A stretch of 64,000 nucleotides of DNA from Zygnema circumcarinatum SAG 698-1b (Eukaryota > Plantae > Zygnematophyceae). The first letter of the stretch is position 1. Every line of letters starts with the position of its first letter. Below are positions 45,740-64,000 of this stretch, piece after piece. The notes beneath the pieces are model-generated. The model was not told where the DNA came from and made no database searches. It saw nothing but the letters and a program-made list of their open reading frames with translations. The stretch is from NCBI GenBank assembly GCA_037447605.1, contig CM074804.1, positions 3,573,909 to 3,637,908 on the forward strand, written 5' to 3'. The translations under genes and the position numbers were made by a program.

Positions 45740-46681
45740 AGTGTGCAAGAGCCAGGTTGGGAGGAAAAGGATATTGCCTCTTGTCTCTTGGCAAGAGAGA
45801 GTTGCTGGGGAAGGAAACAGCATGGGGAAAGAAAAATTAGAAAGTGATTACTAGAAAGAAGAAGAAATTACTTGTTGTGTCCTAGGCTTTAGGCTCTGTA
45901 AAAATGGTTAGAATATTGTGAAGGCTAGATCTGGAGACATGAGGTCGGTACCTCTTATCTCAGTTTTGTTTTCCTCTCGCCCTCACTCTTGTAAACTTAC
46001 CTTGCTCAGTACTTTCACAACGTGACCCATCCGCTCTGCTCTAGCAGGAGGCGGCGACTTTTACTACTTGTGCCTTGCCATGGAATGAGGACGGGGGGTG
46101 CACTCCATTCAAACTCGTGTGTTATACTCGTGAAGGAAGTGAGGCTTTCGGGTAAGTAGGGAGGGCAAGGGGTTTGCGGGGCTGTCGAATTCACTCTGCT
46201 CATGTGACTGGCTTCCATAGGAGTCATCTGCTTCGCTCTATCCGGATATCTGTATTCATTCGGGCAAAGCTGAACAGACACGACCGGCCGATCCGCAGCC
46301 ACTCAATAGAAGATCGCCACACGGTCGCTAACAAGCGGCAGGCAATGGCGCGCACAGCTGTCGCTGGAAGGCGGTAGGCCTCTTGTTGCAGGGCTTTCCA
46401 AGGCTGAAACCGACATAATACACGTCGGGCGCTTGTTCTATGCATCTAACGCTCATCTCTCAGCCTTGAGAAATAGGTTCTGAACCACAACTTTTCCGGA
46501 TTCTTACACATAACGGTTTGAAGGCTCCTAAGGGAGCTCCAACCTTGAGTAATCCCCCACAACATGTTTCTCACTAACAAAATTTCTGTGCTCCATTTGC
46601 AAGTAAAAAACGGACATTTGCAAGAAAAACCGCTGGAAAGGGCACCTCGTCGACTCATTTCGAACTTTAAACATGGTACAA

Positions 46682-49600
46682 TTATGTCCTCCTATCGCTC
46701 AAAGTAACCAACAGGGGAAAGCTATGTTCCGGCTCATATCCGGTCACCTCTTCCACGAGTCTCTCATGTACCGTCCAAACGAGAGGGTCGTAGCGCTCCT
46801 CTACTCTCACAGTAAAGCCGACAGCTGCAGCTTTTTCACAGAACTGCTCCAAGGACTTCCCTCGTCGAGGTGCAAAAAGGACAACGTCACAGGAGGGATC
46901 CTTCTCTGCCCTCGTTATTTCCCCCGACGAATCCCCAGCGGAAGAACCATTTTTCCCAGCCACGTCCACAAGGGGCAAGCCCTTTTGGCTAAGGTCACTT
47001 TCTAACACATTAACTCCCGGCTCAATTGTGCAGGTTCGCAGACAAAGGAGGTCCTGAATGGTCTGCAGGAGAGCGGCGTGCAGCTCACAGAAGAAGAGGC
47101 TGCAACCCATCATCAGGCCGTACACTGAAGTTAGGCCTGAAATCGTCCTTGTCTTGACCATCTCTTCCGCAACCCGAATGTCAATGGACGTGATGGATGC
47201 AGTGCTTATTTGGTTTTACCATCTTTCAGATGTAGATGAAGGTGAAACAAACAAGCACCAAGAGGTGTGCTGCACTCCTGGACAGAGAGGCGCATTACCA
47301 GTCTGCAGCCAGCACAAGGTCGAAGCTGTGACGGAGAGAAGCAGGAACAGGTTCCGCCCAGTGGAGCCTCTCAACGGTCACCTTCGCGGCATGATATGCT
47401 GTCGAGTTCGCAGCCACATTACTTCTCAAAACTGAACCTTGAAGTCACGGCTCACTTCGGCTCACTTTAGATTACCACCTTCACACCACAGCTACTGAGA
47501 CAAAACAAAATGCTAGAAACCCACCAGTAGCGGACCTCTATGCCGCATTGCCAGTATCAAGACGATGCAGAATGTCATACAACCAAGAAGTAACGTCAGG
47601 TGCAAACGAACCGGTACCAAATGCACTGGTTTGGGGCTGACACTGTTCTGTTGACCCCCTTCACGGTCCCATGCTGAGGTTTCCACATGATTGATGGATG
47701 AAAGGATACATCGCAGCACTTGGGGGTTGGCATCGCTGACTGCCACATGGGCCGCTTCAGAGCAGGAGGCAACTGTGAGGCCGGCGAGTCCGTAGCCTGC
47801 ACCAAGTTCTATCACTCTCTTGTTTCTGATGAGACATCACAGAGAAATCATAGATACAAATGAGAGTGGATGCCGGCGTTCACCATGCAAGGCGCTAGTG
47901 TTGCCCTTCCGATGCAAACTACGAGAAAATGAGCAGACGTTCCTTTCTCCCTCAGGAGCTTCTTCCCAAAAAAAACTCGTTTCAGTTCGATATTAACCCC
48001 ACAATTACTCTCCAGCACCAAGCTCTCTCCCTTTTCCAGAATCCCAGTCTTAGAGGTCTACTGGTCTTAGGAACCGCTCGGCAAAACAACGAATTCTCTC
48101 GGAGCTTCGTCACCATCGGCTTACCTAAAGAGCTCAGGACGAGTTGTAGCATAGAACGCCATCACCTCCTCTGCAGGCCACAGACCTGGCACCTCCAACG
48201 GGTTACATGAACCAGTAAAGCATAGAAACCTCTTACGCATCTACACTCGATAATGATTCTTGCAGAGAATTGGGCAACATGCGAAAGAATTCCACTTTTA
48301 TCGACTAGAACAATTCTACGTCGGTTGAGACTCAGTTGTTTAGCAAGAGCTGCTGCTGGTCACTGAGTAACGACAAAGTATCCAATGGCAAAAAAGTAAC
48401 ATTCAGCAGTTGCGAGTAAGTGAGGGTTAAAAAATGACTTCGTCATATCAACAGAAATCTTGAAAGTTGACGTAAGACATTCGACTGTTTCACATGCTTA
48501 ACAGTTCGTCTATTAAGTTTTTGGCTGCTCATCTCTCATTTTCAAAGGTGCCGTTCAAGACTATGCCCTTACAAGCAACTCCTGTGTTGTCGATGTTGTG
48601 GTCTCGCACCTCCTTGAACTCTCGAAGCACCACCACATCATCCCGTCGCTGCCTAGACAAACAAAAGCAAGCGTTATCAATGCCTGCTTGCATTGATGAT
48701 AATCCATTATCACATACAGTGAGCAAAACTACTCCCACTCGAAAGATGACATGATGCACAAAACTGCGCTACCTTGTTCGGGCGACAACATCATACCGAG
48801 ATATGCTGCGATATCGATGCATCAACGTATCACATGTTGGCGCCTATCTTGGTTACAATGCCATACCTGATGTCAATACATTCCAGGATCGAATCACATT
48901 TTGCATTGCGATACCATATTAGATAGCGATGTCCGATATGGTATCGAAATCAGACATGGCATCAGCATCCGATAGATTTGGTCACGGTATTCCGACATTA
49001 CTGTATATCAAAATTCGTTGTTCGGATCCCTAAATTTAGGAAACCCGTCAAAATTCTAAAATCGTAAATATTTCGTTAGAATTAAAGTCCAAGAAGTAGG
49101 GTAGGTTAGGGAGGACTACCACGAGGGCTTACAAGCATTGATATAAAGAGCTTTTTTGAAAGGTTGGATTCGATTACTTTTCAATGTACTGTAAAGTGGA
49201 ACCTACGACTTGTTTTGAATTCTCGACGAATATCACCAATTTCCGGCCTCTGCGAATTTCACAATCGCGAGTTCCAAATCCGGCCAATATCGAGTACCGA
49301 ATTTGAAATTCTTATCACTGGCTGCGAAGCAGTCTTTGGAATTCGAAGGGCGAGGTTCGCGCTTTGCCTTTACCACAGAATGCGAACATGGCAGACCTCA
49401 GAACAAGCTTGGGGCAGCCATCTCCAGGAAGGCTGTACTCCATCGCCACGTTCAACGCGCTCCCCTCCTCCTCTAGCACAGATTGGCCTTGTGACAACTT
49501 CTTGCACGGAATAAGATTGAAGACTCCTGACAGTCGGCGAGAGACTGATGCTTCCACTGGCGGTTGCACATTTCCTGCCACCCCTGCATTGAAAAGCACT

Positions 49601-49987
49601 GCCATTTGAATGTTGACTCTACTCCTCTAATGCTCTCTCATCCAGGACATGTAATGAATTACAAAGGAAAAGCTGGTGCGTTGATAAGGGTTCAAATTAA
49701 GGTTAGAGTTAGGGATTGGGCTAGGCAAGAATTTGTGTTCGTTCTGTGTGTCAAGACTATATTCACAATAGCTGTCAGCATACGGGTGAGTGCCTGGGTC
49801 AATGAAGGCATCAAATTAGAATTAGGGTTAAGTGCTTCGCAGCTTTCTGGATGTGCTGAGGAAAGGCAGCCATCCACGCACCGCTACTCGATTTGGACAA
49901 TGCATTCGCGAGGATGCGCCAGCGGGCCCTCGCCCGCTCGGCGCGTTGCAATGGCGGAGCTCGGCCGTCCCCCGCCATGGCGGCCAT
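46682..49987 (-). CDS. CAMKMT: Calmodulin-lysine N-methyltransferase
   Basis: Spliced motifs ARWRILANAL, GVFNLIPC, NIDNTGVACLWPAEEVMAFY, VIELGAGYGLAGL (SAM-binding motif I), SDANPQV, FDLVLAADCLFF, FAPRRGKSL..F, HSFPLLVTL. The start may be 49987 or 49978. Confidence 0.92.
47432..47709 (-). other. U12-type (minor spliceosome) GT-AG intron in CAMKMT
   Basis: Donor GTATCCTTT (exact U12 consensus) at 47709; branch-like CCGTGAC at 47450-47444; AG at 47433-47432; splicing restores PQVLR-F-LRSN. Confidence 0.75.
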
Positions 49988-50038
49988 GGCGGAGCGGCTC
50001 GGAAGCCAAGTCTGCCCCTTCCGGCGCCATCGCCTCCT

Positions 50039-50128
50039 CCGTACATTCGGACTACCGTACGAAAAATGATGTACGGCCACATAATTGGAGAATCATACGG
50101 AAAGTACGACAAGGGGAAATACCGTACA
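50039..50128. promoter_or_regulatory. Cluster of five GTAC cores upstream of CAMKMT
   Basis: GTAC at 50041, 50057, 50071, 50104, 50124. Confidence 0.5.
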
Positions 50129-51130
50129 TTGAGAGCCTTAGCCAATCACAAATTCCCACGTTACAAGCAATAACTCGTGGCAAATGGTGATTGGCTGGTC
50201 AGTTGTCAATGACGAGCCGCCGCAAGCTGGCTCATAATTTTGCATAATTTTGCGGAGATCTCGGGCCCAGGGACGCACGCACTCGCACGTGCGAGCCGGA
50301 CGGATCTTACGCTCCGAGCGGATTCGGGCAGGCCCTAACATATTTTTGTCTCTCAAGAAAACTTCCAAGGGGCGGGATATCCAAAATTGGGGGGGTGGGG
50401 GTTTATCATTCTCCAAAGTTTTTAGGTTTCCAGTACATGACGACGGACTGGGCGCATCATCATGACATCATCACGACGTCACAGAGGCAACCAGACGGTC
50501 ATGCCAGCCATGACCCATCTCATGTCCATTGACGAGTTCCGCCCACGTTGTCACGTCACACAAAAAAGAGGCTTCGAGAGGACGAATGGGGGGAGGGAGG
50601 GAGGAGCTTCATTAAGGGACCCAGGGGGTGAAGCAGGCAGCCGGAAGGAAATGTCACAGCTTGAAGCGAGCACTACCCGGACTAGCTTCTACCTCGGCAA
50701 TTTGCAAATTTTAAATTTTTTATTAAATGATATACTGATATTAATGTCTAAATCTACTAAAATTTTGTTAAAATATAAAAGCAAACGCTAAAGGCACTTC
50801 AATAAACGCTACAGAAATGGAAAAGCATGATGGCTGCACACAGGGAAGAATGAAGCGCGCCGTCGCAGAGGGACCACCGCCCGACGGCCTTCACAGAACG
50901 CAGCCATCATGCTCTCTTCTACTTTGAAGCGACCACTTCCTTCATCCGCTTCCTACTTTGAACTTACAACTGCGGACATCCTCTTTACCTTGCAAGAAGA
51001 GGATGACAAGGAGAGCGCTGAGGAAGCCTCGCAAGCTTCACCGGCGCCTGCTCGCTCCACTGTGCCCCCAAGGCCAAAAGAACCAAAAGTCCAGCATAGC
51101 ATGGTGAACGTATCCTCTGCCTCGCCCACA

Positions 51131-52894
51131 TTACGGCGGTGGTCCCGCCGTGACCTCTCCCTGCCACCTTGCCAGCGCGCGTCGGAGCTTCTTGCATGCG
51201 CCCACGGGCAGCCCGAGGGCGAGGAGCTCCTCCTCGGCCATGGTGGAGAGCTCGGCCATGTCCACCCACGCTTCAAGGAGAGCACCCGCGAACTGGGTCA
51301 GACCTGCGTACTCAAGGAACATGGCCAGGGGGTTCGCCAAACTGATGCTGTTTTCATGAACGGTTCCATGAATGCCGCCGGAAGATAGACCTTCCACGGA
51401 GGTGAAAAATGGTTCGTTCGACCCACAAGTTTGATTCCCCATCATCGCTGCGGCGCTTTCAAGGCCTGAAAATGAGCCAGGGTTTAAGCCAACTCCGAGA
51501 GCAGACGCTGTGAGAGTCGACCATCCACCCCCTCCCACAGTTGCACCGGCACTCACTGGCAAAGCGAAGGAGGATGGAGCAGCATTCAGCTTTGCTCCTA
51601 AATTGGAAGAAAGGCTCAAAGGATTTGTCATTTCCTCCAACTTGCTGCTGCCAAACTGGAAGCTGCTTACTAGTAGGCCTGGCCAAAACGACCCACGGAC
51701 ACCCGCATCCACCATTGCTGCTCCTGCAAGTCCCTCTCTCAGCCCTAATCCTTGACCTAAAACCTGCCCAGCAGTCCCCTCCCCAAAATTCAACGCCGAG
51801 CCTACTGTCAAGCTCGGTTCCATCCTCCCCTGCATCGCCCTCGTGTCTATGTGCGCGTCGGGCCGCGTAAAGCTCACTCCAAGCTTCAGAGCCGCCGCCT
51901 CTAACCCCATGGAACTGCTCAGACCAACATGGGCTGTGGGACTGCCCGGCGGCCGCAACGGAACGGGACAGATCACATCCACACATGGAGGGGAGGGTGG
52001 ACCCGAGGGAGGCCGAATCCTCTCTGCCGGAAAATCCCCAGCACCGTCTGCAGGAGTGGGTGGCAGCACCACTCCGGGCAAGCTCTCTGCCAGCGATTGG
52101 TTCACGCTTGCGGGTGGGGGAACGGGCAGTGCTTCTCGAGATAAGGGAGCTAACGAGCAGGAAGCCATTCCGGCAGTGCCAACTATGCTTCCTGCAATGG
52201 CGGTATCGACCCCGTTTCCAAGCAGAGAATCCTCGTTTGGCTGTGCAGGTTGGACTGCTTCTGCCTGCAGGCCGGCCTGTGCTTCTAAAGCTTGAAGAGT
52301 GAGAAGGGAGAGGTGTTCTGACTCCTCCCCTTCCCGCCGATGCCATGACCCCTTGCGATGCCGTTTGTGCCCCCCCGAGCAGTGTACGGCCTGCTCTGCA
52401 GGTTCGTGCTGCCGCTTCCACCGATGTTCTGCGGGACCAAACCAAATCTAAACGTTCATCAGCGACTGTTTTCATAACCAGCAAAATATGAAGCACGTGC
52501 GGAAACTAGGGAAGGAACTCACCCCTCGTGTGAAGAACAGATGCGAGTAACGATGTGACTCGGGAAGGGGACTGCTTTTCATCCTGTCCCAGCTGTACTA
52601 CTTCCGCTGCATCCACGAAAAAGCCCCAACCTCTAGAAATCTTCAGTTAAAAGCTCCTTCCGTCCTTCATTCCTCCTCTCTCTCGGTCCCTTACACCCAC
52701 CCTCCTTCTGCCTCCCTCCCTCCCTAAACTCCTCTTCCTTTCCTCCCTTCTCCTCCCCCTATTTTTCCCCATCACACCTCCGGCCTCCCTCTCCCCTTCT
52801 CCTTCCCTCCTACTCTCCACTCCCTCAGCCTGACCAACAAAAACCCTAACCTTTCCCTTTTTATAGCCTGGACTATGACCTTCAGCTTTTGTCT

Positions 52895-52928
<34 letters not shown>

Positions 52929-55900
52929 ATTTTATGTGGAGACTTCCAGCCTCCTCGCCCCATGCATTCACGTACCCTCCGCCTTCATTTCAGTCTGTGT
53001 ATCGTCCAACAGACTGCTCAGCCCTTCCTCTCCCGCACCGTCTCCCACCCCCTCGTCCTCCACATCAATGTCCTGCCGAGGTCTTCGACCCAGAGCAAGT
53101 TTGAATGGAGTTGTTTTCATGCGATGATCGACAGCAGAATTCATATGCCCTGAATTATCACAAATGCCAATACACTGTCTTAGGTGCTTTCGGGCTCAAA
53201 ACTACTTCTTTCTTTTGTTATGAAAGTGGGCAAATTTCACCACATTGCATCTCCACATAGTAATCTCGGTATTGTCAACACAGGAAGGTGCCATCACCTG
53301 TCTTTCATCACCCTATGGTGATGAAAGGCCTGTCCTCCCTCCTTTATCCCTCCTACTCTTGTCCCCCCCACTAGGATTGAGAACCCTTCAAACGTTACAA
53401 GATTATAGAGGACAGCACGCACATTGGATGAGAGGGAGGCACGCTGCCCAGTCACGCCTCCCTGTAGAAGAGGTCCATCTGGAAATTAAGTCATGTACGG
53501 GACCGCTCCCTGGAACAAGAATAGGGCTGACATGGTTCTGCAGCATATCCTGGATCAACGAAGAAAGCAAGAAAAAAAACATCAGGAAAAACCTGTTCTT
53601 TCTAGCATTCGGCGCGTATTATGGTTAATTTCAAGTGCCTGAGCTCACCTTCCCCTCCTGCGACGAGAAAGTAATTCCCCCAGAAAACCTTTCGCCTTCC
53701 ATCTGAGCCGGGTCACATATAGCATCAGAGCCATTGCTGCATTCTTCCATTCCCGTACCCAACCCATTCCCCCCCTCCATGACATCATTCCTTCCCCCTT
53801 CTCCCTCCTTCTCCTTCCCCTCTCCTCCCAGCTCCTCACCCTGGCTTCCACTCTCCTCCCTCTCTTCCCCTCTATGCCTGCCTCTGTTCCTCCCTCCTCC
53901 GCGTCTATGTCCATGCCACCTTCTCCCTCTCCCGTTCCGTCCCCAGTGATGGCCCCTCCATGGTTTCTGTTCTCCAAGACTGGGCTGCCCCCCCCCCTCC
54001 TCCTCCCTCCCAAGATGGTGAAACCCTTTGGGCCGTGCCCTCATCCTCGCTCCCGGCCAAATGGAACGAACTTTTTCGGCCACGGAGAATACAAAGGCCG
54101 GGGAAACACCGGGTCCGGGTTGGAGCACAGCTGGCGGTCCGACAAGTGTGAGCCAAACCACGAGTTGCTGCGCAACGGCAGACTCTGAGGGGGAGTTCAG
54201 CGCAGCGAGGAGAGTGAAACGGGAGCCGATGTCTTCGGCACAGAGAATCCATGACTTGTCGCCATCTGGGGCATGCTCCATGTTCATCAATTCCAGCTGC
54301 ATGAAGGGAATGAACTGCAGATTAGGGTTTAGTGAGAAGTCCGCTTCAATCGTGGTAATCCTGTAAAGTCGCCGAAGATGCAAATACCTTCTTAGAATCA
54401 AATTCTCTGCTGGATCAAGAGTACGAATCTGGGAGACGGACTCCCACCAATCGTTTGCTGCAAAATCTTTCATCCAAGCTAGCTCAAAGAAATCTATGAG
54501 AGCTGTCCTTCAGGATTGTTTGATGGCAGGTTTTCAATAGTCAGGGAGAAGAAACCGACCTGCATGTTCGCCCAGGGAGCAGGGGGCGGCCTTGCATGCC
54601 GAGTGAGAACATGGCGCGGGCCATCGCGGGGCCGCGGGCCGCGGTGCATTTGCACTTCCTCTCCGCTGCCGCCCGCCGGGGCCCCTTCCTCCCCCTGCTG
54701 CTGAGTGCAGTGCGAACACATAAGCAGAAACTGACGCACAACCTTCTCTGGGATTCCCATGTACTGGTCACTCAGCTGCACCCGAACAGACACTCAATAG
54801 GCATAGGAGAATCGCTTTGTTTTTTTAGAATTCAAAAGTTTGTCGGGACGAACTAACCAGCCTTATAACTCCATGAGCAAAGCAAAATTGGAACCAATGT
54901 TGTGTTCGATGAAATGGTTGGACCACGAGACTATCTGTAACGTAAGGAGCCACCCAGACAATCTTCACGTATCACGGCGCAATGCACTTCATGCCCCAGA
55001 CTTTCCCCTCTTGCGATGGTGGAACTTCGAAAACCGACTCAAAACGGATGGACCAATGTAAATGTGCAAAAGTTGGGGAAATAGGACCTTTGCATGGATG
55101 CAAAAGAGCATGAATATTCTTATGGAAGACATTGCAACTTAAAAACAAAACGAATTCGAAGTGCTTGCGTTCCGAGTTTGCCTGAACGCGAAATTCCCTT
55201 AGTTTCTAAGCTGGAAAGTTATTCTCTCCTCGCAAGTCATTTCAATTCAGCAATTCTATATCCGCATAGGCAGCTATGTCACCTTGCGATGGGTCTTTCT
55301 GATGCCGCCGTGCCTCGTTTGCACCACATGCACGTCATGCAGAACTGACAGAATCTCGCTTGCCGGAACAACACGCCGAGGCTCACCCTGGCATTCCAAC
55401 ACCGTGCATGATAAGGAAAATGCCGATAATCTAAACTTAATCCCAACGAAACACCTAATGGAACTTCAGAACAATCAGCTTGACCAAACTGCTGCTTTCA
55501 AAAGAACAACAATACATTAGCAGCAAGACAGCTCGGAAACTCTCAAATCCTGGAACAGCTACAATTCTGCCTTCCGCAGACTGTTTCTCTACCACTATGG
55601 CCCCCTCCCTCCACTTCACTCTCTATTATCCGCTTTCCCTTCGTTTATTTAGCTTTTCTCTCCCGCTCTTCCCTGCCCCCCTCACTCTCTTCCCCCACTC
55701 TCTCCCCCTCCCCCTTCGACTCTATAAGGAGGCGACTGGTACCTGATCATTAAGCGTGTAGACGGCATCATACAACCCTAATTGCGGCGAAGTTACCAGG
55801 TGATACTTCTTTCTCCGCACTGCATGCCGGAACTTGGCGTCACCAGTCTGCCCCTTTGCGCCCTTCTGAAAGTCCGTCTTCAAGAACTGCCGCACCTGCT

Positions 55901-56168
55901 CGTACAGCTCATCTGAGATAATATTCGACCCTTTGCGCACATATTCAGCCAGCCACGTTCTGAACTCCCCGAACCCTAATGCGCCCGCCGAGCCATCCGG
56001 AGCTTCTGTTGTCTGCGACGGGCTCCCATCACGACTCGACACCAGCGCGTTCTCTCCCGCCGCTGCTGCCGCCACCCCTCCCTTCCCTTCACCTTCCTCT
56101 CCCTCCTCTCCCCTTCCTCCCTCCCATCCGCCCCCTACCCCGCCGCCCCTCTCTCCCTCCTTCGCCAT
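51131..56168 (-). CDS. Integrase-derived protein: NOL4-like N-terminus + H2C2 zinc finger + inactivated DDE core + C-terminal SAM domain (~997 aa)
   Basis: Exons (-): 56168-55743, 55387-55283, 54775-54560, 54296-53649, 53549-53423, 53149-52976, 52428-51131. All GT-AG, phases 0,0,0,0,1,1; total 2994 nt = 997 aa + stop. Zinc finger HDVH..TRHGG..CSHC; core MQLELMNM..DG.KSWIL..EDIGSRFTLLAAL..VAQQL..GPPAVLQ; RW..DWAACLPLIQWHMNS..TPFKLALG; SAM LAMFLEYAGLTQF..VDMAELSTMAEEELLALGLPVGACKKL. Confidence 0.8.
52899..52925 (+). repeat. Poly(A) run (27 nt; poly-T on the sense strand) in the last intron of the integrase-SAM gene
   Basis: Directly visible. Confidence 0.9.
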
Positions 56169-57150
56169 GGCTTTCCACAGACGGCCTCTGAAGGCAGGCG
56201 TTGTGCAGCTCTGGCCGCGGATGCTGCAATGTCGGAGTCGGCAATCCCACCAAAGAGACGCTCTTGAATCCGTCCTTCTCTCCCTCTCTCCCTTCCTCCC
56301 TCCGCCCGCGGCCTCGTCTTCTCGCGGCGGCGGGCGGTCAGCGCGACGCGAGGCCGGACTTCGGCAACTGCGCAGCCACCAAATATCGCGGACGCCGATT
56401 CTGGTCGCTGTACGAAGGTGCCGCGAACCTGCCGGGCCAGAAGGCGCCCTTTGGAGTCCAGTCAGTCCGTCCGTACAGGGTTGACTCTCAGGCCGTACGA
56501 AACGGGCCACGTGGCCAGAAGGGGGCCGTCGCATACGACAAAGGGGGTCACTGACCCGATGGGACGGAACCTGTTTGGCAGGAGCGTGGCTGGCCGGGGT
56601 TGCGAGTTTGGGCTTGAGGGGCGGGCAGGCTCGTGGGCTCTGCGGGCTTGTGCGGAGACAAGCTGGCGGTAGAGCACCACGCAACTCACGCTCTTTTTTT
56701 TTCGTAAATATGTAATGTGTTAGACAGAGGATTTTAGTGATTGGGTTGGTTGAGACGTGCAAGCCAACGCGTAGCTACATGTTGTGTATATATAGTTGCG
56801 AGTGTGCCTGGCCGTTGAAACACTGCAGGGCAGGGCAGGAGCATGTCTAGCTGGATTCCAAAAGGTCGGCTTAGTCAAACTGTAGTCAACAGCTTAGACT
56901 TAACCCTCTTATAAAAGCATCCCAAAAGCACATTCACCTGTCACCTCACTGCTGCTCTTTAATAAGGCCCATGTATTTACAAGCAGCACCACAGCTCAGA
57001 CAGCATGCTAACACGAATCCCGTCAATCAACATGAAGTCCCTCTGTGAACATGGCTGCAGTTAAAAAGTCCTTCCCACTGAACAGGCGCTTCGCAGCACC
57101 AAGCCGCCCTTCGCAAATCCCTCCGGAAACATCCCTCGGGACTGAAGCTC

Positions 57151-60100
57151 TCAGCGCTTTCGGCACAGCGTTACCCCGTCTCCTACTGCCACCTGTCAGG
57201 CATGCACAGCTCGGCATGGGTCATCATGGGCAATGTCCGCCTCTACTCACTGAGTAACTTAAGCATGGAGGTACACGTTCTCTATGCATAAAAATAAAAA
57301 AAAAGTGTACATGCTCACAAGCGGTAGGGATTGCAAAGCAGTACATCCGCTTAACATATTAAAAAACAAGCACCTTTCATGAGCTCAAATGAACAAGCTA
57401 TAGAAAGGCAGAGGAGAACAGAGCAAAAGCAGCCAATGGCCCCACCATGCTCATATCCACCCGCTGGTCCATCACAATGAAGTCGTTGAAGTTCCGCAAA
57501 GCAACAGTCCTCACGTCTGTGACCTGCAAGTCAGCAGCCATGGAGCATTTTTTCTGACAACATCGCAGGCATCGGACTCACGCTACATCTGCGCAAAGCA
57601 CCTGTTTATGTCTCACTCAAGGTATATGCCCGCTATCACACTTATACAGTATTGACTCCTTATGTGAGAATAATATCTTAATGACGACCTACTTGGAGAA
57701 AAACTGCATGGACACCCTGGCCAGCGCCGGCTCCATTAATGCTACGACTATCGCTCACAGATCTAGTTATCTAAAGTGCACGGGAATTACAGAAACAAGT
57801 AAAACAGTGCGATCCTTTACCTGGGGATCCGCAACATCACCGTGCCACAGCACATTATCCACCACCAATAGACCTCCCGGTCTTAACTGATACCCACAAC
57901 ACCAGTTTTCCAGCCACCCCAAAATGGAAAAGGAGTGAGGAAGAAAGTGAGATAAAAGAGTGCATAAGGCTTTGAACTGCAAACTCTTCGGCGCAGTTCA
58001 ATGTTCCATTATAATATAGCATGGCGCGAGGGGAGATGACACGGATCACTCCTCTGTAAGTGTGCTATGAACGCTAGGAACAAGACGGCTTCTAGACGTC
58101 ACGTAGCTGTGGCGGAATATGCACAATCACAAGAGCTACAAAAGTGAAATATATGAAGCATCACAGCTGCTGGTGAGACAGCATGCCTCGCATATTAGTT
58201 CTTCTACAAACCCGCAATAGTTATGCACTGTTCAGTGTTGGAAAGGATCTGGTCTTACGAGCTGGAGCAAAAGCTCATAATATATGGAGTAACTGCGCTT
58301 ATCCGCATCCAAGAAGGCAAAATCATAGCTGCACAAAAAGATGAGAAAAATTGTCTCTTGAGCACTACACCATGTGGTCAGCCCTGTCCATAAACCATTC
58401 GCCTGTCGCTGTGTAGTCTGTACGACAGTTATGGGCGCACGTGACTTCTCGACTGAGCCTTGATGCGAGAAGGTAGATGACGCCAACAAAAAACGAAATA
58501 CTTCGTTGATGTATAGAAACAAGAGAGGCTCCTCAGTCAAGAGGCAAACAGAAGCCAAGTTTTGGCATTCAGAACCAGCAACTACATTGAACAAAGAAGA
58601 AGCAAGATAATGACTTAGAAACGCTAAACAAACGACATGAGCTTAGGTCTGATGCAAGGAGCAAACATGACTGGAGTTTTCCATGATCAATGCGTACATT
58701 GACAGACAAATACGATCAGTCATGTCACGACTAAACCCACCTTTCAGCCTCTCCATTCTGCAATAGTGCCAGCAGCGTGTCCTCCGCTAAGCCCAGCCGA
58801 GCATCAATCTGCGATAGACATGTTTCGTCCGTCGTATGTATAAGCAATAGCTGGACTGCAGCTACTCCTGAAGAAGCTCAGGCAGACTGGGTTATGCAGA
58901 TAGAGAGCGGTCAGAAATAAGTTGTGTCAGGTTGGTGAACATGGCCAGATCCTTCACCTCAAAGGGTTCTGCACTTCGAAAACTGAGAGCAAAAACGGCA
59001 GGCCGAATTATTCTCCTCACCTTATGCTCAACTCCTGCAAGACGAAAATATTTGCGTGCAAGCTCCATGCTCTGCTCGACCCTCTCACAAGCCACTAGTC
59101 GTCCATGAGGTGGCAATGCCAGTGCTACTGAGATAGCTGAATAACCCTGCAAACCTTATTGAGGAGTAAGCCACAAAATACGTTCAGCCTAAAACACAAC
59201 ATGCATACGGCAAAACTAAGTTTCATCTCAATAGCTCACACCACTAGTTTGAACAGACGTGCTGTACAAACAGATTAAGAGAACACTTCGAAGCTCCTTA
59301 AACAACAACCCACATATACCTGTGAAATGTATGACTTACCGCGAAAACACCAACTTCAATGCATTTCTCCGCGCCCATTAGTTTAGCCAACATGTACAAC
59401 AACTGGCCCTGCTCTGGAGAGATCTGCTTCGGAAAAAAAACATTGATGCAAATCGTGAGTGGCCATTTTAACAGAGAAAGAAGTGCATACAGTCAGACAT
59501 TTCAACTTCATTACAAATCCAAAACCTTCACCAAACTGGAGTTTGGCTCACACAAGGCCGGCAGGTACTGGAATATGAGGAAAAACTATGCAAACCAAAG
59601 CAAACCACAGCGTGCTTCACTGACACGTGAACTGCTTCAAAAAGGGGCATGTACGTTGGAAGCTTGAAAATCGACGCTGAGAATAGAAACAGAGATTTTT
59701 GAAGAGAACAAAGAGAAGGCGGACCCAGGAGCGAGGCAAAAGATTGCAAGCATTTTGAATCTGGACTGCAATATCGTTTCTTTTTACAAAGCTGTCCGTG
59801 TTAAAAAAAAAAAAAAAAAAAACAGGAACGTTGTTAATTCTGTCTCATGACTCACAGGAGCCTAAAGGCCATCGCTCTGGCAAGGTTTGTCTCTATGCGT
59901 GCAACTTAATGATTGGCTTTGACTACTACGATGGCCCTTTAAGCTGCCTACGGAAAACGTAAAGTTTCCATTGACGCTTCAACTCCAAAAGTAAAAACGA
60001 TTAATGGCACAAGAGATCACCTGCATCGAGCTCCCGGGCATGGTCGCTGTCTCCTTCCGTACCTTTGCGAGAACCTGTGATGTCCACAGTTACGTACTGA

Positions 60101-60829
60101 TTGAGAATAGGCCTGACTTGGCGCATATGCAGATAGATCTTGTCCCATTAATCCTCAAATGTCCTAAGGTCTCTGTCGACAGAATCAGCACGAACCACTT
60201 CGATTATGTGTGAGTGAGAAGCATCAAGTAAAGCCTAATTGCTAAAAAATGTCCGAGCTGCAGTTTTTGTGTAACCCCGCTGCGCACTTTATTGCAGTAC
60301 TCCTACGTTTCCCTCTCTAAAAGCTTCACGAGAGAAAGCCAGGAAATTGACCATAAGGTGTGTATTCCTTGGTTGCAGCACATGAGCAATTCAGAAGCAG
60401 GCGGCTCCACAAGCCTTGCTACATACGAATATTGAGACCGTGAGACTTTTGCCGAGCGAAACTCACCTCAGGCTCTCGAGTGTGAGAAAGAATGTATTCA
60501 TGTATGCTCTCGGTCATCTGAACCGTCCTCCGTCCTCCAGGCTTGGCATCCTTTGCTGCTGCCTCCGGATGCAGGCCACTCGCTCTAACGCTTTTAAATT
60601 CTTTTCTTGCTCTTAAAGGAATTGACGTCGCAAAACGGCAGTAAGAAAGCTCTTGGCCGTTGCAAAAAGAATTCATGCCCACTCGTTTTAAATAGTGTGA
60701 TGACGGTTGTAGTCTATCCTGCATGTATAGTTTCCATCTGAGAAGGCCAGGCTCTTGCAGCCTCCCACCGCACAACTGCAGGGCAGACGACCTCGCCGGG
60801 AAGAAAATCTTCCCACACGAAGCCGCCAT
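57151..60829 (-). CDS. CCoAOMT/COMT-like O-methyltransferase (Methyltransf_3), probable organellar transit peptide
   Basis: Spliced motifs IHEYILSHTREPEVLAKVRKET, MQISPEQGQLL, CIEVGVFAGYS, YDFAFLDADKRSY..YYE, LRPGGLLVVDNVLWHG, VAVGDGVTLCRKR*. Stop at 57151-57153. Confidence 0.92.
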
Positions 60830-62032
60830 GGCTGCTCGCGCGGCTCTTCCTTGAAATGTCGATCGAGAGCAAGAGAAGCTGAATTCTTCTTGGAGGCAGG
60901 CACCCGCCTGGCGAGAAAAGCGCTGTGAGGATAGACGGCAGCAGCGGGTGCCTTTCCGTGGCTTTGTGTTGTGTTGTTGTGAATGGAGGGAGGAGGGAGA
61001 GGCCGTCTGCACTGACTACAGTACGACCTGCCCCATCCGACGCATTGCGACTCTCCCCTCGCAGTCAGTGCCGTTTCTTCGAGTTCAAGGATGCGCACAG
61101 GGGGAGAAAATGGCATTGATCTCACGTTGGCGAGGCCACCAAATGTACATGCACAAAATCAGCATGGAGAACCACGAGGAATTGGTCGCAAGGACCTAAG
61201 CACAAAAGAAAACAGCGAAGCGGAAAGAAAGGAGCGGAAAGCTACGCCTAGGCACACCAACGCAGCCCTCTCTAGAAGCAGCCGCGAAGGTCACCGATGT
61301 GCAGCACATCGCGCATGTCACCCTGCATTTCCCGCATTCGCTGCACACATGCATGCATGGATGGATGGGGATGGCATGGCCGCATGGGTCCTGCAGTCCA
61401 GTGAGTTCCATGACTCCATGACCCCGTGCCACCGTGACCCCATCCATGCTTTTCCGAACTCTCACGGCATCCATGGATGGCAGCATTGGCATTGGCATTG
61501 GCATGCATGCCTCAAATTCGGCGAAGCTGCGGGGCACCTTCTGGAACGTTCGCTGCGCCGCCGTTCCGCGTTCCGTCGCGTGCGGCGTTGGCGCCTTCGC
61601 GTCGGCCGGCAGCGGGCGCCACGTGGCCCCGCGCGGGCGGGCGAGCGCGGCCCCGCGCAGCCACACGCGGTCCCGTCCGTACGCACGCCATCCACCCTCG
61701 TGGCCCGCGCACCGCCGCCGATCCGCCCGCGATCGACGGCCCGTGCTGCCCGACGCTCACCGCGCTGCCCGCTGGGATCGCATCGGACGGCCAGGACGCG
61801 CCCACGCCTCGCGCCCGCCCTTGGGAGGGCGGGTGGCGGGGCCTGCCTGCGGGAGCGATACATAGGCGCAGTCCGCTAAATGGTGGAGGAGTCTTTCTTC
61901 AGGAATTAGGCATTTGGACGCGGCCGAGGGAGGGAGGTGCATTCGAGCCGTTGCAGAGCGAGTGGGTCTGCGGGAGGGTGTAGTAAGCGAGTCAGGGAGA
62001 GGGAGAGGGTTGTGAATTCGTAGCAAGCAGCC

Positions 62033-64000
62033 ATGGCGGCCGTGGCCTCATCGGTGGCAACTGTCTCCTCTGCGCCGGTTGCGTCGCGCAATCTCCGCCG
62101 GTCTGTGGACCGCACTGTGAGGAAGGTGGCTCTGGCCGCAGAGAAGCATGGGAAGCAGATGAAGTCGCAGATGCTGGGCCGCGAGCTGGCTCTGAGAGTC
62201 TCCTTGGAGCTCTCTGCCGCGCAGGAAAGGAACAGCTCTGCCCGCGCTGCCGCAGAAGACTGTGCGCGCGTTCTGGCGAGCGCCCTCCCTGCAGCCGCCT
62301 TGGCTTCCCTCGTTGTGAGCCTCACTGCAGAGCCCGCTGTGGCTGTGGACTTTCCCCCTCCTCAGGCCTCCTCGCCCGTGGAGCAGCTGCAGGCTGCCAC
62401 GGAGTTCCCAGCGAAGGCCTTTGGGTCCTCTTCCCTTACTGCTCCCCCTGTGGAGGCGAAGAAGGTGGACTTACCAGAAGGCAACCAGTGGCGATACAGT
62501 GAATTTATTAATGCAGTGAAGACAGGAAAGGTGGAGCGCGTGAGGTTCAGCAAGGACGGCTCATCCCTGCAGGTAAGAATACTGGAAGTCTTTTGAGTCG
62601 TCACAGACGGCGTGAGTCTGGCGTGAGGTGCTCACTTGCCCAGCAATGTGAGCACGTTACTTTGCTGCCATAGTTGGACGTCTTCAAGCATTTTCTTCAA
62701 GCCAAAGTCGCCTTTACATTTGCAGAGGTTGCCTATTTGCTCGTGCAATTTCGGCCGCGTTAGTTCCAGTGATTGAAGGAATTTGTTCGTTTGGATAATT
62801 GCGGTGAACAATATGGGATATGGAAGCTTGACTTACCATCTCAGCTCTGCAGTGCATGTTTGGGGGAAAGCATAGTTTTTGCTTCATGACTTAAGAATAT
62901 AACATGTTGTCCATTTTTATGGAGATTTAATTTCTTTGGTTGTTTTCAATTTTTTTTTTTGCAATTCATGATTTCGAGTGCAATGGGTAGCGCGCAGATA
63001 CTTTTGACATACATTATGTACCATTCTAACTTTTTGTCTGTGTGCTCCTTACCTCTGGTGTAGTTGACGGCAATTGATGGGAGGAGGGCAAACGTGACTC
63101 TTCCCAATGACCCGGAGCTGGTGGATATCTTGGCTTCGAATGGAGTGGATATTTCCGTCTCCGAGGGAGATTCTACAAACAATTACATCAACCTGCTCGG
63201 CAATCTTCTGTTTCCCCTGCTGGCATTCGGTGGCCTGTTCTTCCTCTTCAGGTCAGTTTCTCGTCGTGCACGGAAGAGTGAAGGTCTCAATTTGCACACA
63301 AGCATTGTTGTATGCTACTGCTTGACAATGTACATATTTTTCCTCTTAACGCTAGTTGTTCTTGCATCCTTCCCAACTTCATTTGTGCATTTAGCCTCTC
63401 AGCAGACAGTTGGCAGCACTACAGCAGATTATTTTTCATTCCTGCTCACAAATCTGCACACATGATGCGCTTTTGGTCGTTGCAGGCGCGCCCAGGGTGG
63501 CCCTGGAGGAGGCCCAGGAGGCATGGGAGGCCCCATGGATTTCGGACGCAGCAAGTCCAAGTTTCAGGAGGTGCCCGAGACGGGTGTGAGCTTCCAGGAT
63601 GTCGCTGGTGCCGACCAAGCAAAGCTGGAGCTGCAGGAAGTGGTCGACTTCTTGAAGAATCCTGGTCAGTGTTTCTGTTTGTGATTGTTGAACAGTGCGA
63701 AATCTTGAAACTTTTATTGAATCATCGACGCCAGTCTCGCTGTTGGTGTATTGGCAAGCTTGTTTTCCTCAAACGTCTTTTTTTATTGTGGGCTTTGGGT
63801 GGGGCGCTCGAAGGTAGCCATGTTCCTAAGTGTTTTTTTGGGGTATTTCTGGGAAAATTTGGAAATGTATACCGGATTGTGCCCTTCAAAGCGGCAATCA
63901 GTTTCAGATTTGATGCAGCATTATGGCGAGTCTACCTTTTTCTCACGGTTTCCTCTTCTTTGATTGCAGATAAGTATACGCAGCTTGGCGCTAAAATTCC
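62033..64000 (+). CDS. FTSH1: Chloroplast thylakoid FtsH protease, type A (FtsH1/FtsH5), 5' part
   Basis: Exons 62033-62572, 63064-63251, 63486-63664, 63970-beyond window. [98 protein letters not shown]. Confidence 0.96.

Follow-up and report, generated by a model that had tools for sequence, protein, structure and literature searches.

The mammalian genes KRBA2 and SCAND3 (ZBED9) are 'cellular integrases' that derive from GINGER2 transposases, and their integrases belong to the GINGER2 clade of cut-and-paste DNA transposons, which has been reported chiefly from protostomes and cnidarians, and also from a few protists (PMC3575427). Imagin, an integrase-like gene of malacostracan crustaceans, was derived from Ginger1 and has been conserved for >400 million years (PMC12863088). 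Here, we describe a minus-strand gene in a 64,000-nucleotide stretch of the streptophyte alga Zygnema circumcarinatum SAG 698-1b (GenBank assembly GCA_037447605.1, contig CM074804.1, positions 3,573,909–3,637,908 of the forward strand; hereafter the window, to which all positions refer). With a probability of roughly 0.55, the locus is one seven-exon host gene that combines a dead integrase with a C-terminal sterile alpha motif (SAM) domain, and it is probably a new variant of the host-transposase fusion genes.

A predicted seven-exon gene with integrase and SAM parts

The predicted gene extends over ~56168–51131, the SAM exon forming its 3' end, and has a predicted product of ~970–1060 residues. 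All searches, alignments and structure predictions were performed on single exons, whose lengths were summed. The features are as follows, with slashes marking exon borders.

55743–56168, minus strand: exon 1, from ATG 56168; a G/E-rich head, then an N-terminal module preceding the zinc motif; ends LNDQ/GT in phase 0
55283–55387, minus strand: exon 2, the His-His half of the His-His-Cys-Cys (HHCC) zinc-binding domain (..VLHDVHVVQTRHGGIRKTHRK)
54560–54775, minus strand: exon 3, the Cys-x2-Cys half of HHCC (..FLLMCSHCTQQQ), then a G/E/P/R-rich tail
53646–54485, minus strand: exon 4, the predicted catalytically dead integrase core, then an R/G/E-rich low-complexity insert; donor AAG/GTGAGC
53423–53549, minus strand: exon 5, the continuation of the core (..ILVPGSGPVHDLISRWTSSTGRRDWAACLPLIQ), with Pro at the catalytic Glu position (53513–53511)
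52976–53149, minus strand: exon 6, the end of the integrase core (MNSAVDHRMKTTPFKLALGRRP), then an acidic tail; donor GAGG/GTACGT
52429–52975, minus strand: putative intron 6 (547 nt), GT...AG, GC content 0.48, with a T-run and purine-rich low complexity; codon score -0.52 bits/codon
51338–52428, minus strand: first part of exon 7, a His/Arg/Lys-rich patch (HRWKRQH...HKRHRKGSWHRRE), then a G/A/L/S/P-rich linker of ~320 residues; internal ATG 52168
51149–51337, minus strand: SAM domain, five helices, exon 7 residues 364–426
51131–51148, minus strand: C-terminal five residues and TAA stop (51133–51131)

The integrase part retains its zinc-binding residues and appears catalytically dead

The original prediction derived the upstream exons from an integrase with a zinc finger and a dead catalytic core, and both the ancestry and the loss of the catalytic residues were upheld by the searches and family alignments. 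A 147-residue piece of exon 4 gave 34 matches at E ≤ 1e-3 among 1.84 billion representative proteins (best E 4.4e-9, none <1e-10). All 34 are stand-alone proteins of 84–997 residues and none is a Pol polyprotein; Pfam detected rve in 23 and Integrase_H2C2 in 15 of the 33 that were scanned. Those with names are 'KRAB-A domain-containing protein 2(-like)' and 'Gypsy retrotransposon integrase-like protein 1'. As to its type, the integrase origin stood, whereas a retrotransposon integrase could not be demonstrated: the integrase part appears to be KRBA2/GIN1-like, and its tentative placement in GINGER2 rests on best matches rather than on a tree. Homology to the rve core is transitive, via the exon 4 matches that pass Pfam rve (PF00665), together with the alignments of exons 5 and 6. 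A sequence search of the PDB with the integrase-core exon yielded nothing meaningful.

The relatives were collinear with exons 2–6 (tblastn; exon 5 was placed with relatives P0034 and P0007), and profile alignment refined the correspondence. Exon 2 covers columns 84–113 of family profile A2 (hhalign E 1.9e-7) and exon 3 columns 116–141 (E 7.6e-7), the two being contiguous over the 507-nt intron. Exon 5 covers columns 49–77 of family profile A3 (E 1.2e-6) and exon 6 columns 80–106 (E 2.7e-4), with the split Trp codon at column 78 and exact spacing over intron 5. Since removal of introns 2 and 5 at their GT/AG borders restores the exact family spacing, there is strong evidence that both introns are real. 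Exon 1 is collinear, with a weak alignment to the N-terminal part of the profile (hhalign E 0.03), and a language-model feature search with this exon returned noise only.

The family alignment has four invariant columns (H, H, C and C), all of which are matched, with exon 2 contributing HDVH...RH and exon 3 CSHC, and all three residues of the Asp-Asp-Glu (DDE) triad are replaced. The first Asp (D1) is Asn at 54284–54282 (LELMNM versus VDLIDM in the family), the site of the second (D2; 54125–54093) reads LQPGPGVSPAF with no acidic residue (versus LQSDNGREF; D to P/G), and the catalytic Glu is Pro at 53513–53511 (ILVPGSG versus QGLVEQG). The nearest relatives are <40% identical to the algal integrase part. 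As judged from these alignments, the catalytic triad is gone, and the algal protein would be a relative, not an active member, of the DDE integrases.

Several of the relatives are themselves degenerate. P0005 (L001:1295–3379, on a Logan contig of SRR31285091) is a stand-alone protein of 694 residues that lacks a SAM and whose disordered tail is rich in G/A/S/D; of the relatives, it comes closest to exon 2 in the His-His region (..HIVVGGHEGASRKTHERL vs ..HVVQTRHGGIRKTHRKL), and it retains D1 and has lost D2 (LQSSHTEAF). It may be another independently inactivated member, from a microbial eukaryote. At least one DDE residue is also missing from the KRBA2-like relatives P0009 (named from a moth), P0014 and P0029, and degenerate motifs among the KRBA2-like relatives include LQSEMGHDL, ELLNF/LESDEE and LQIEKGREY. 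It seems that catalysis has been lost repeatedly in the KRBA2-like integrase family while HHCC was kept. The C-termini of P0025, P0029 and P0034 carry a Cys-rich motif, CRCK..C...RC.C.K....C...CH (CXC/tesmin-like), which indicates that C-terminal add-ons vary across the integrase family, the one predicted for the algal gene being SAM.

The last exon ends in a SAM fold

The same prediction had placed a SAM domain at the end of the last exon, after a long disordered linker. The peptide it quoted is encoded on the minus strand and runs to the stop at 51133–51131, and the SAM fold was borne out by phmmer, AlphaFold2, Foldseek and VIA-align. In a phmmer search of PDB sequences, the SAM of ANKS3 was the best match (E 7.3e-4 over the full domain), followed by the SAMs of Sans, ANKS4B and Caskin. 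Modelled by AlphaFold2 from the single sequence, the 89 C-terminal residues form a bundle of five helices, with a predicted local distance difference test score (pLDDT) of ~86–91 across the domain. Searched against the PDB with Foldseek, this model had only SAM domains among its top 50 matches (tankyrase-1: TM 0.87, root-mean-square deviation (rmsd) 1.1 Å), and VIA-align likewise matched the tankyrase-1 SAM (Z 10.5, rmsd 1.5 Å, 61/62 residues aligned); the top 50 matches of both methods span the entire domain with rmsd 1.0–1.5 Å. The clusters nearest to the SAM piece in a language-model feature search were SAM families, with a score of just 0.84 that we regard as a lead, not as evidence.

All Pfam SAM matches were below their cutoffs (SAM_1, PF00536, 18.9 vs 23 bits; SAM_EPH 18.9 vs 27; SAM_TNK 16.4 vs 25). 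Membership is thus assigned on account of the fold and the phmmer match to ANKS3. Given the model, we conclude that the C-terminal segment is a genuine SAM fold. In a model of the whole 431-residue exon 7, the helices occupy residues 364–426 (51337–51149), within the interval marked earlier (51131–51340), whereas residues 1–363 have pLDDT <50 (the model was built without an alignment), in agreement with the predicted linker; the ~363 residues preceding SAM are probably disordered.

Charged residues are segregated within the domain, helices 1–4 having seven acidic and no basic residues and helix 5 having five basic and one acidic. This pattern is compatible with head-to-tail or heterotypic SAM–SAM contacts. 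Where the two deposited ANKS3 chains differ (Ile in 4nj8, Glu in 4nl9), the algal residue is Glu, and Leu52 corresponds to Val in the alga; self-polymerisation is therefore not readable from the sequence.

A second open reading frame (ORF) of 345 codons lies in another frame at 51459–52496 (minus strand) and overlaps the linker of exon 7. It translates into Arg-rich nonsense and is probably a by-product of the GC-rich, stop-poor composition. Long ORFs in the exon 7 region are therefore weak evidence alone.

Predicted splicing of the SAM exon to the integrase exons

A fused transcript, in which exon 6 (52976) is spliced to exon 7 (52428), is predicted and is the moderately probable outcome. The donor (GAGG/GTACGT) and acceptor (..GTCCCGCAG/AA) are canonical, and phases 1 and 2 combine to give a Glu codon; if intron 6 were retained, a stop would follow after two codons (...KAEGT-stop). 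The 86 codons from the acceptor to ATG 52168 have a GC content of 0.60 versus 0.48 for the introns (GC1/GC2/GC3, 0.77/0.49/0.55) and score +0.32 bits/codon in the SAM frame, versus -0.4 to -0.5 for the introns. This stretch also encodes the His/Arg/Lys-rich patch, which resembles a nuclear localisation signal (NLS).

Alternative explanations

A number of observations weigh against a single domesticated gene. SAM was absent from all 33 exon 4 relatives scanned with Pfam, and word-based protein searches found no homologue of the whole of exon 7 (a query probably swamped by low-complexity words), of its residues 340–431 or of the SAM piece alone among the proteins of 237–754 and 49–155 residues that they covered; the fusion is thus without comparative support. 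In a Pfam scan of the gene's own exon pieces, there was no rve match, and H2C2 (exon 2; PF17921, 13.4 bits) and SAM matched only below threshold. The openness of the 86 codons upstream of ATG 52168 is weak evidence (shuffles, P = 0.05), and this stretch is also open in a second frame. ATG 52168 itself has a good context (GGAATGG, with a purine at -3 and G at +4) and opens a free-standing linker–SAM protein of 345 residues. Moreover, Ginger elements are themselves multi-exon (PMC12863088), so introns alone are no proof of domestication. The start context, the 345-residue ATG-to-stop ORF, the marginal significance of the open codons before it and the lack of SAM in the integrase relatives together speak for two adjoining genes, i.e., a dead integrase that ends at or just past exon 6, and a separate gene that encodes the disordered-SAM protein from ATG 52168. 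We consider this arrangement rather unlikely, as the stretch between acceptor and ATG differs from the introns in GC content, shows codon-position periodicity, scores as coding in the SAM frame and encodes the NLS-like patch. The frame also opens a few codons from a good AG acceptor in the phase that matches exon 6, and a separate promoter would need to fit in the 547-nt low-complexity interval.

The multi-exon structure of Ginger elements could also be taken to indicate that the locus is a decaying, non-functional remnant of a Ginger-like DNA transposon, lying beside the SAM exon or having captured it. The long low-complexity inserts in exons 3 and 4 would fit such decay, as would the finding of no orthologue among the 1.84 billion representatives with the exon 4 query (best E 4.4e-9). 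However, ~970–1060 codons are open over seven exons in consistent phases, despite <40% identity and three replaced catalytic residues, and the HHCC residues and the exact family spacing are retained. No inverted or direct repeat above chance was found between 46000–51131 and 56168–61000, i.e., there were no terminal inverted repeats (TIRs) or long terminal repeats (LTRs) in the ~5 kb that adjoin each end of the gene; among inverted matches, the best was 13 nt (E 0.31), and only low-complexity repeats were found. As TIRs and LTRs are missing and the gene occurs once in the window, it is not a transposon copy, and we regard a decaying remnant as quite unlikely. The sub-threshold Pfam scores, the failure of the word-based searches to find a homologue and the ease with which helical bundles reach middling Z-scores might suggest that the likeness to SAM is accidental, the bundle being a helical segment without SAM-type function. 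This would be very improbable in view of the full-domain phmmer match to ANKS3, the exclusively SAM matches of Foldseek and VIA-align over the whole domain, the high confidence of a model built without any alignment and, as a lead only, the SAM families among the nearest language-model clusters. The single seven-exon host gene is the reading that we carry forward.

Exon borders and surroundings

The range in product length is set by two uncertain borders, the exon 3 donor and the exon 4 acceptor. With the alternative donor GAA/GTGCAA, exon 3 would be shorter and end at 54668 instead of 54560, and exon 4 has an alternative acceptor at 54315/54314 (ctgcag/TTC) versus that at 54485. The intervening segment, 54485–54315, has an intron-like codon score (-0.30 bits/codon) and falls outside most family alignments, for which reasons the shorter exon 4 model is preferred; the shorter version of both exons is favoured by codon scoring but unproven. 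The summed exons are a multiple of three in either model (3183 nt, 1061 codons; or 2904 nt, 968 codons). A reading of exon 5 in frame 1 (53480–53427) was rejected, as tblastn and hhalign place this exon in frame 0 (53549–53423).

Low-complexity stretches that are R/G/E-rich (53646–54035, minus strand) and G/E/P/R-rich (54560–54690, minus strand) lie in frame within exons 4 and 3, respectively, where they split the integrase core and the HHCC-to-core spacer. Their codon score is near neutral (+0.1 bits/codon), and either coding inserts or introns that escaped recognition may account for them. The introns include a run of ~28 T on the gene strand (52890–52921) and purine-rich tracts (52650–52850 and 55600–55720), and purine-rich low complexity of the GGGAGG type recurs across several of them. 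About 3 kb upstream of the gene, an exon of a family-3 O-methyltransferase (CCoAOMT-like; 58892–59149, minus strand; Pfam Methyltransf_3, 40 bits) belongs to an ordinary host gene. Further along, 62033–63465 (plus strand) presumably holds N-terminal exons of a chloroplast-type FtsH protease, which resemble plant FtsH2/8 and identify the window as DNA of the green lineage; Pfam FtsH_ext matched there below threshold (17 bits).

Proposed role and significance

The fused protein would comprise, from N- to C-terminus, the N-terminal module, the HHCC domain, a dead RNase-H-like core, the basic NLS-like patch, the disordered linker of ~320 residues and SAM. With all DDE residues replaced, it would no longer cut or join DNA. 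In integrases, the HHCC domain and the core scaffold bind DNA and multimerise, and through these two the algal protein may retain the DNA-binding and multimerising parts of a transposase. SAM domains are known to drive polymerisation in chromatin and signalling scaffolds; here, a SAM that has an acidic face and ends in a basic helix could provide self-association or partner recruitment. Such a protein might be a nuclear adaptor or regulator that is bound to DNA or chromatin, which by analogy would be its likeliest role, and it could also help to control related transposons. We infer the exon 6–7 splice, the nuclear location, the oligomerisation and the function from these features. A more specific scheme, in which an alga-specific dead GINGER2-type integrase recognises DNA by way of HHCC and the core, its targets perhaps being the termini of related transposons, and the tethered SAM polymerises head-to-tail into a silencing or chromatin-organising assembly, is speculative and on present grounds unlikely.

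The combination of integrase and SAM had been flagged as unfamiliar, and it was indeed found neither among the 33 Pfam-scanned relatives nor in the literature searched. That literature also described no Ginger2-type domestication in algae or plants and no integrase-derived host genes in the plant lineage, and the supplementary tables of PMC12062965 have no SAM entry. The value of the locus is limited for now, as the fused transcript is predicted and no orthologues were found among the 1.84 billion representatives. In animals, new regulators have repeatedly arisen when host genes captured a transposase (KRBA2, SCAND3, ZBTB11 and Imagin). If true, the proposed gene would extend this principle to a close algal relative of land plants, with SAM as a new partner domain, and would offer a compact test case for why a catalytically dead integrase fold is retained. 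Should the polymerising assembly also prove true, it would be the first of its kind in two ways: as an integrase–SAM architecture and, within the plant lineage, as a Ginger2-type domestication.

Comparison with known systems

The SAM part has its best structural matches in tankyrase 1/2, ANKS3/ANKS6, BICC1, Caskin and Sans/ANKS4B (Z 9.4–10.5), with ANKS3 the best by sequence. The segregation of acidic helices 1–4 from a basic helix 5 is as expected for the mid-loop/end-helix contacts of polymerising or heterotypic SAMs. The algal SAM is 20–32% identical to the tankyrase/ANKS-type SAMs, and those proteins contain no transposase. At the other end of the protein, NOL4/NOL4L may share the same N-terminal module and CxxC-containing zinc motif.

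Imagin resembles the algal gene in several respects: it has introns, its DDE motif is defunct, its zinc finger is retained and inverted repeats are absent (PMC12863088). It differs in its Ginger1 source, its crustacean hosts and its lack of SAM, and in its long conservation, whereas the exon 4 search turned up no orthologue for the algal gene. In the ZBTB11 type (BTB/POZ plus an integrase zinc-binding domain; PMC12062965), as in the alga, HHCC is reused in a host regulator with an oligomerisation domain; however, ZBTB11 has kept no more than the zinc-binding domain, to which C2H2 fingers are added, whereas the alga retains the whole dead core and has SAM in place of BTB.

KRBA2(-like) and GIN1-like proteins are the closest named sequence relatives of the algal integrase part. 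The alga is unlike KRBA2 and SCAND3 in that SAM is C-terminal, with a long disordered linker before it, whereas KRAB and SCAN are N-terminal, and in that all three DDE residues are replaced and the host is a streptophyte alga. Like the algal gene, in which the join is predicted, KRBA2 and SCAND3 have a stand-alone HHCC and rve unit joined to a host protein-interaction domain, the partner having been added by exon shuffling, and the SCAN of SCAND3 is an oligomerisation module, as is SAM. KRBA2 (KRAB plus integrase), SCAND3/ZBED9 (SCAN plus integrase) and ZBTB11 (BTB plus integrase zinc domain) thus follow the same logic as that proposed for the algal protein.

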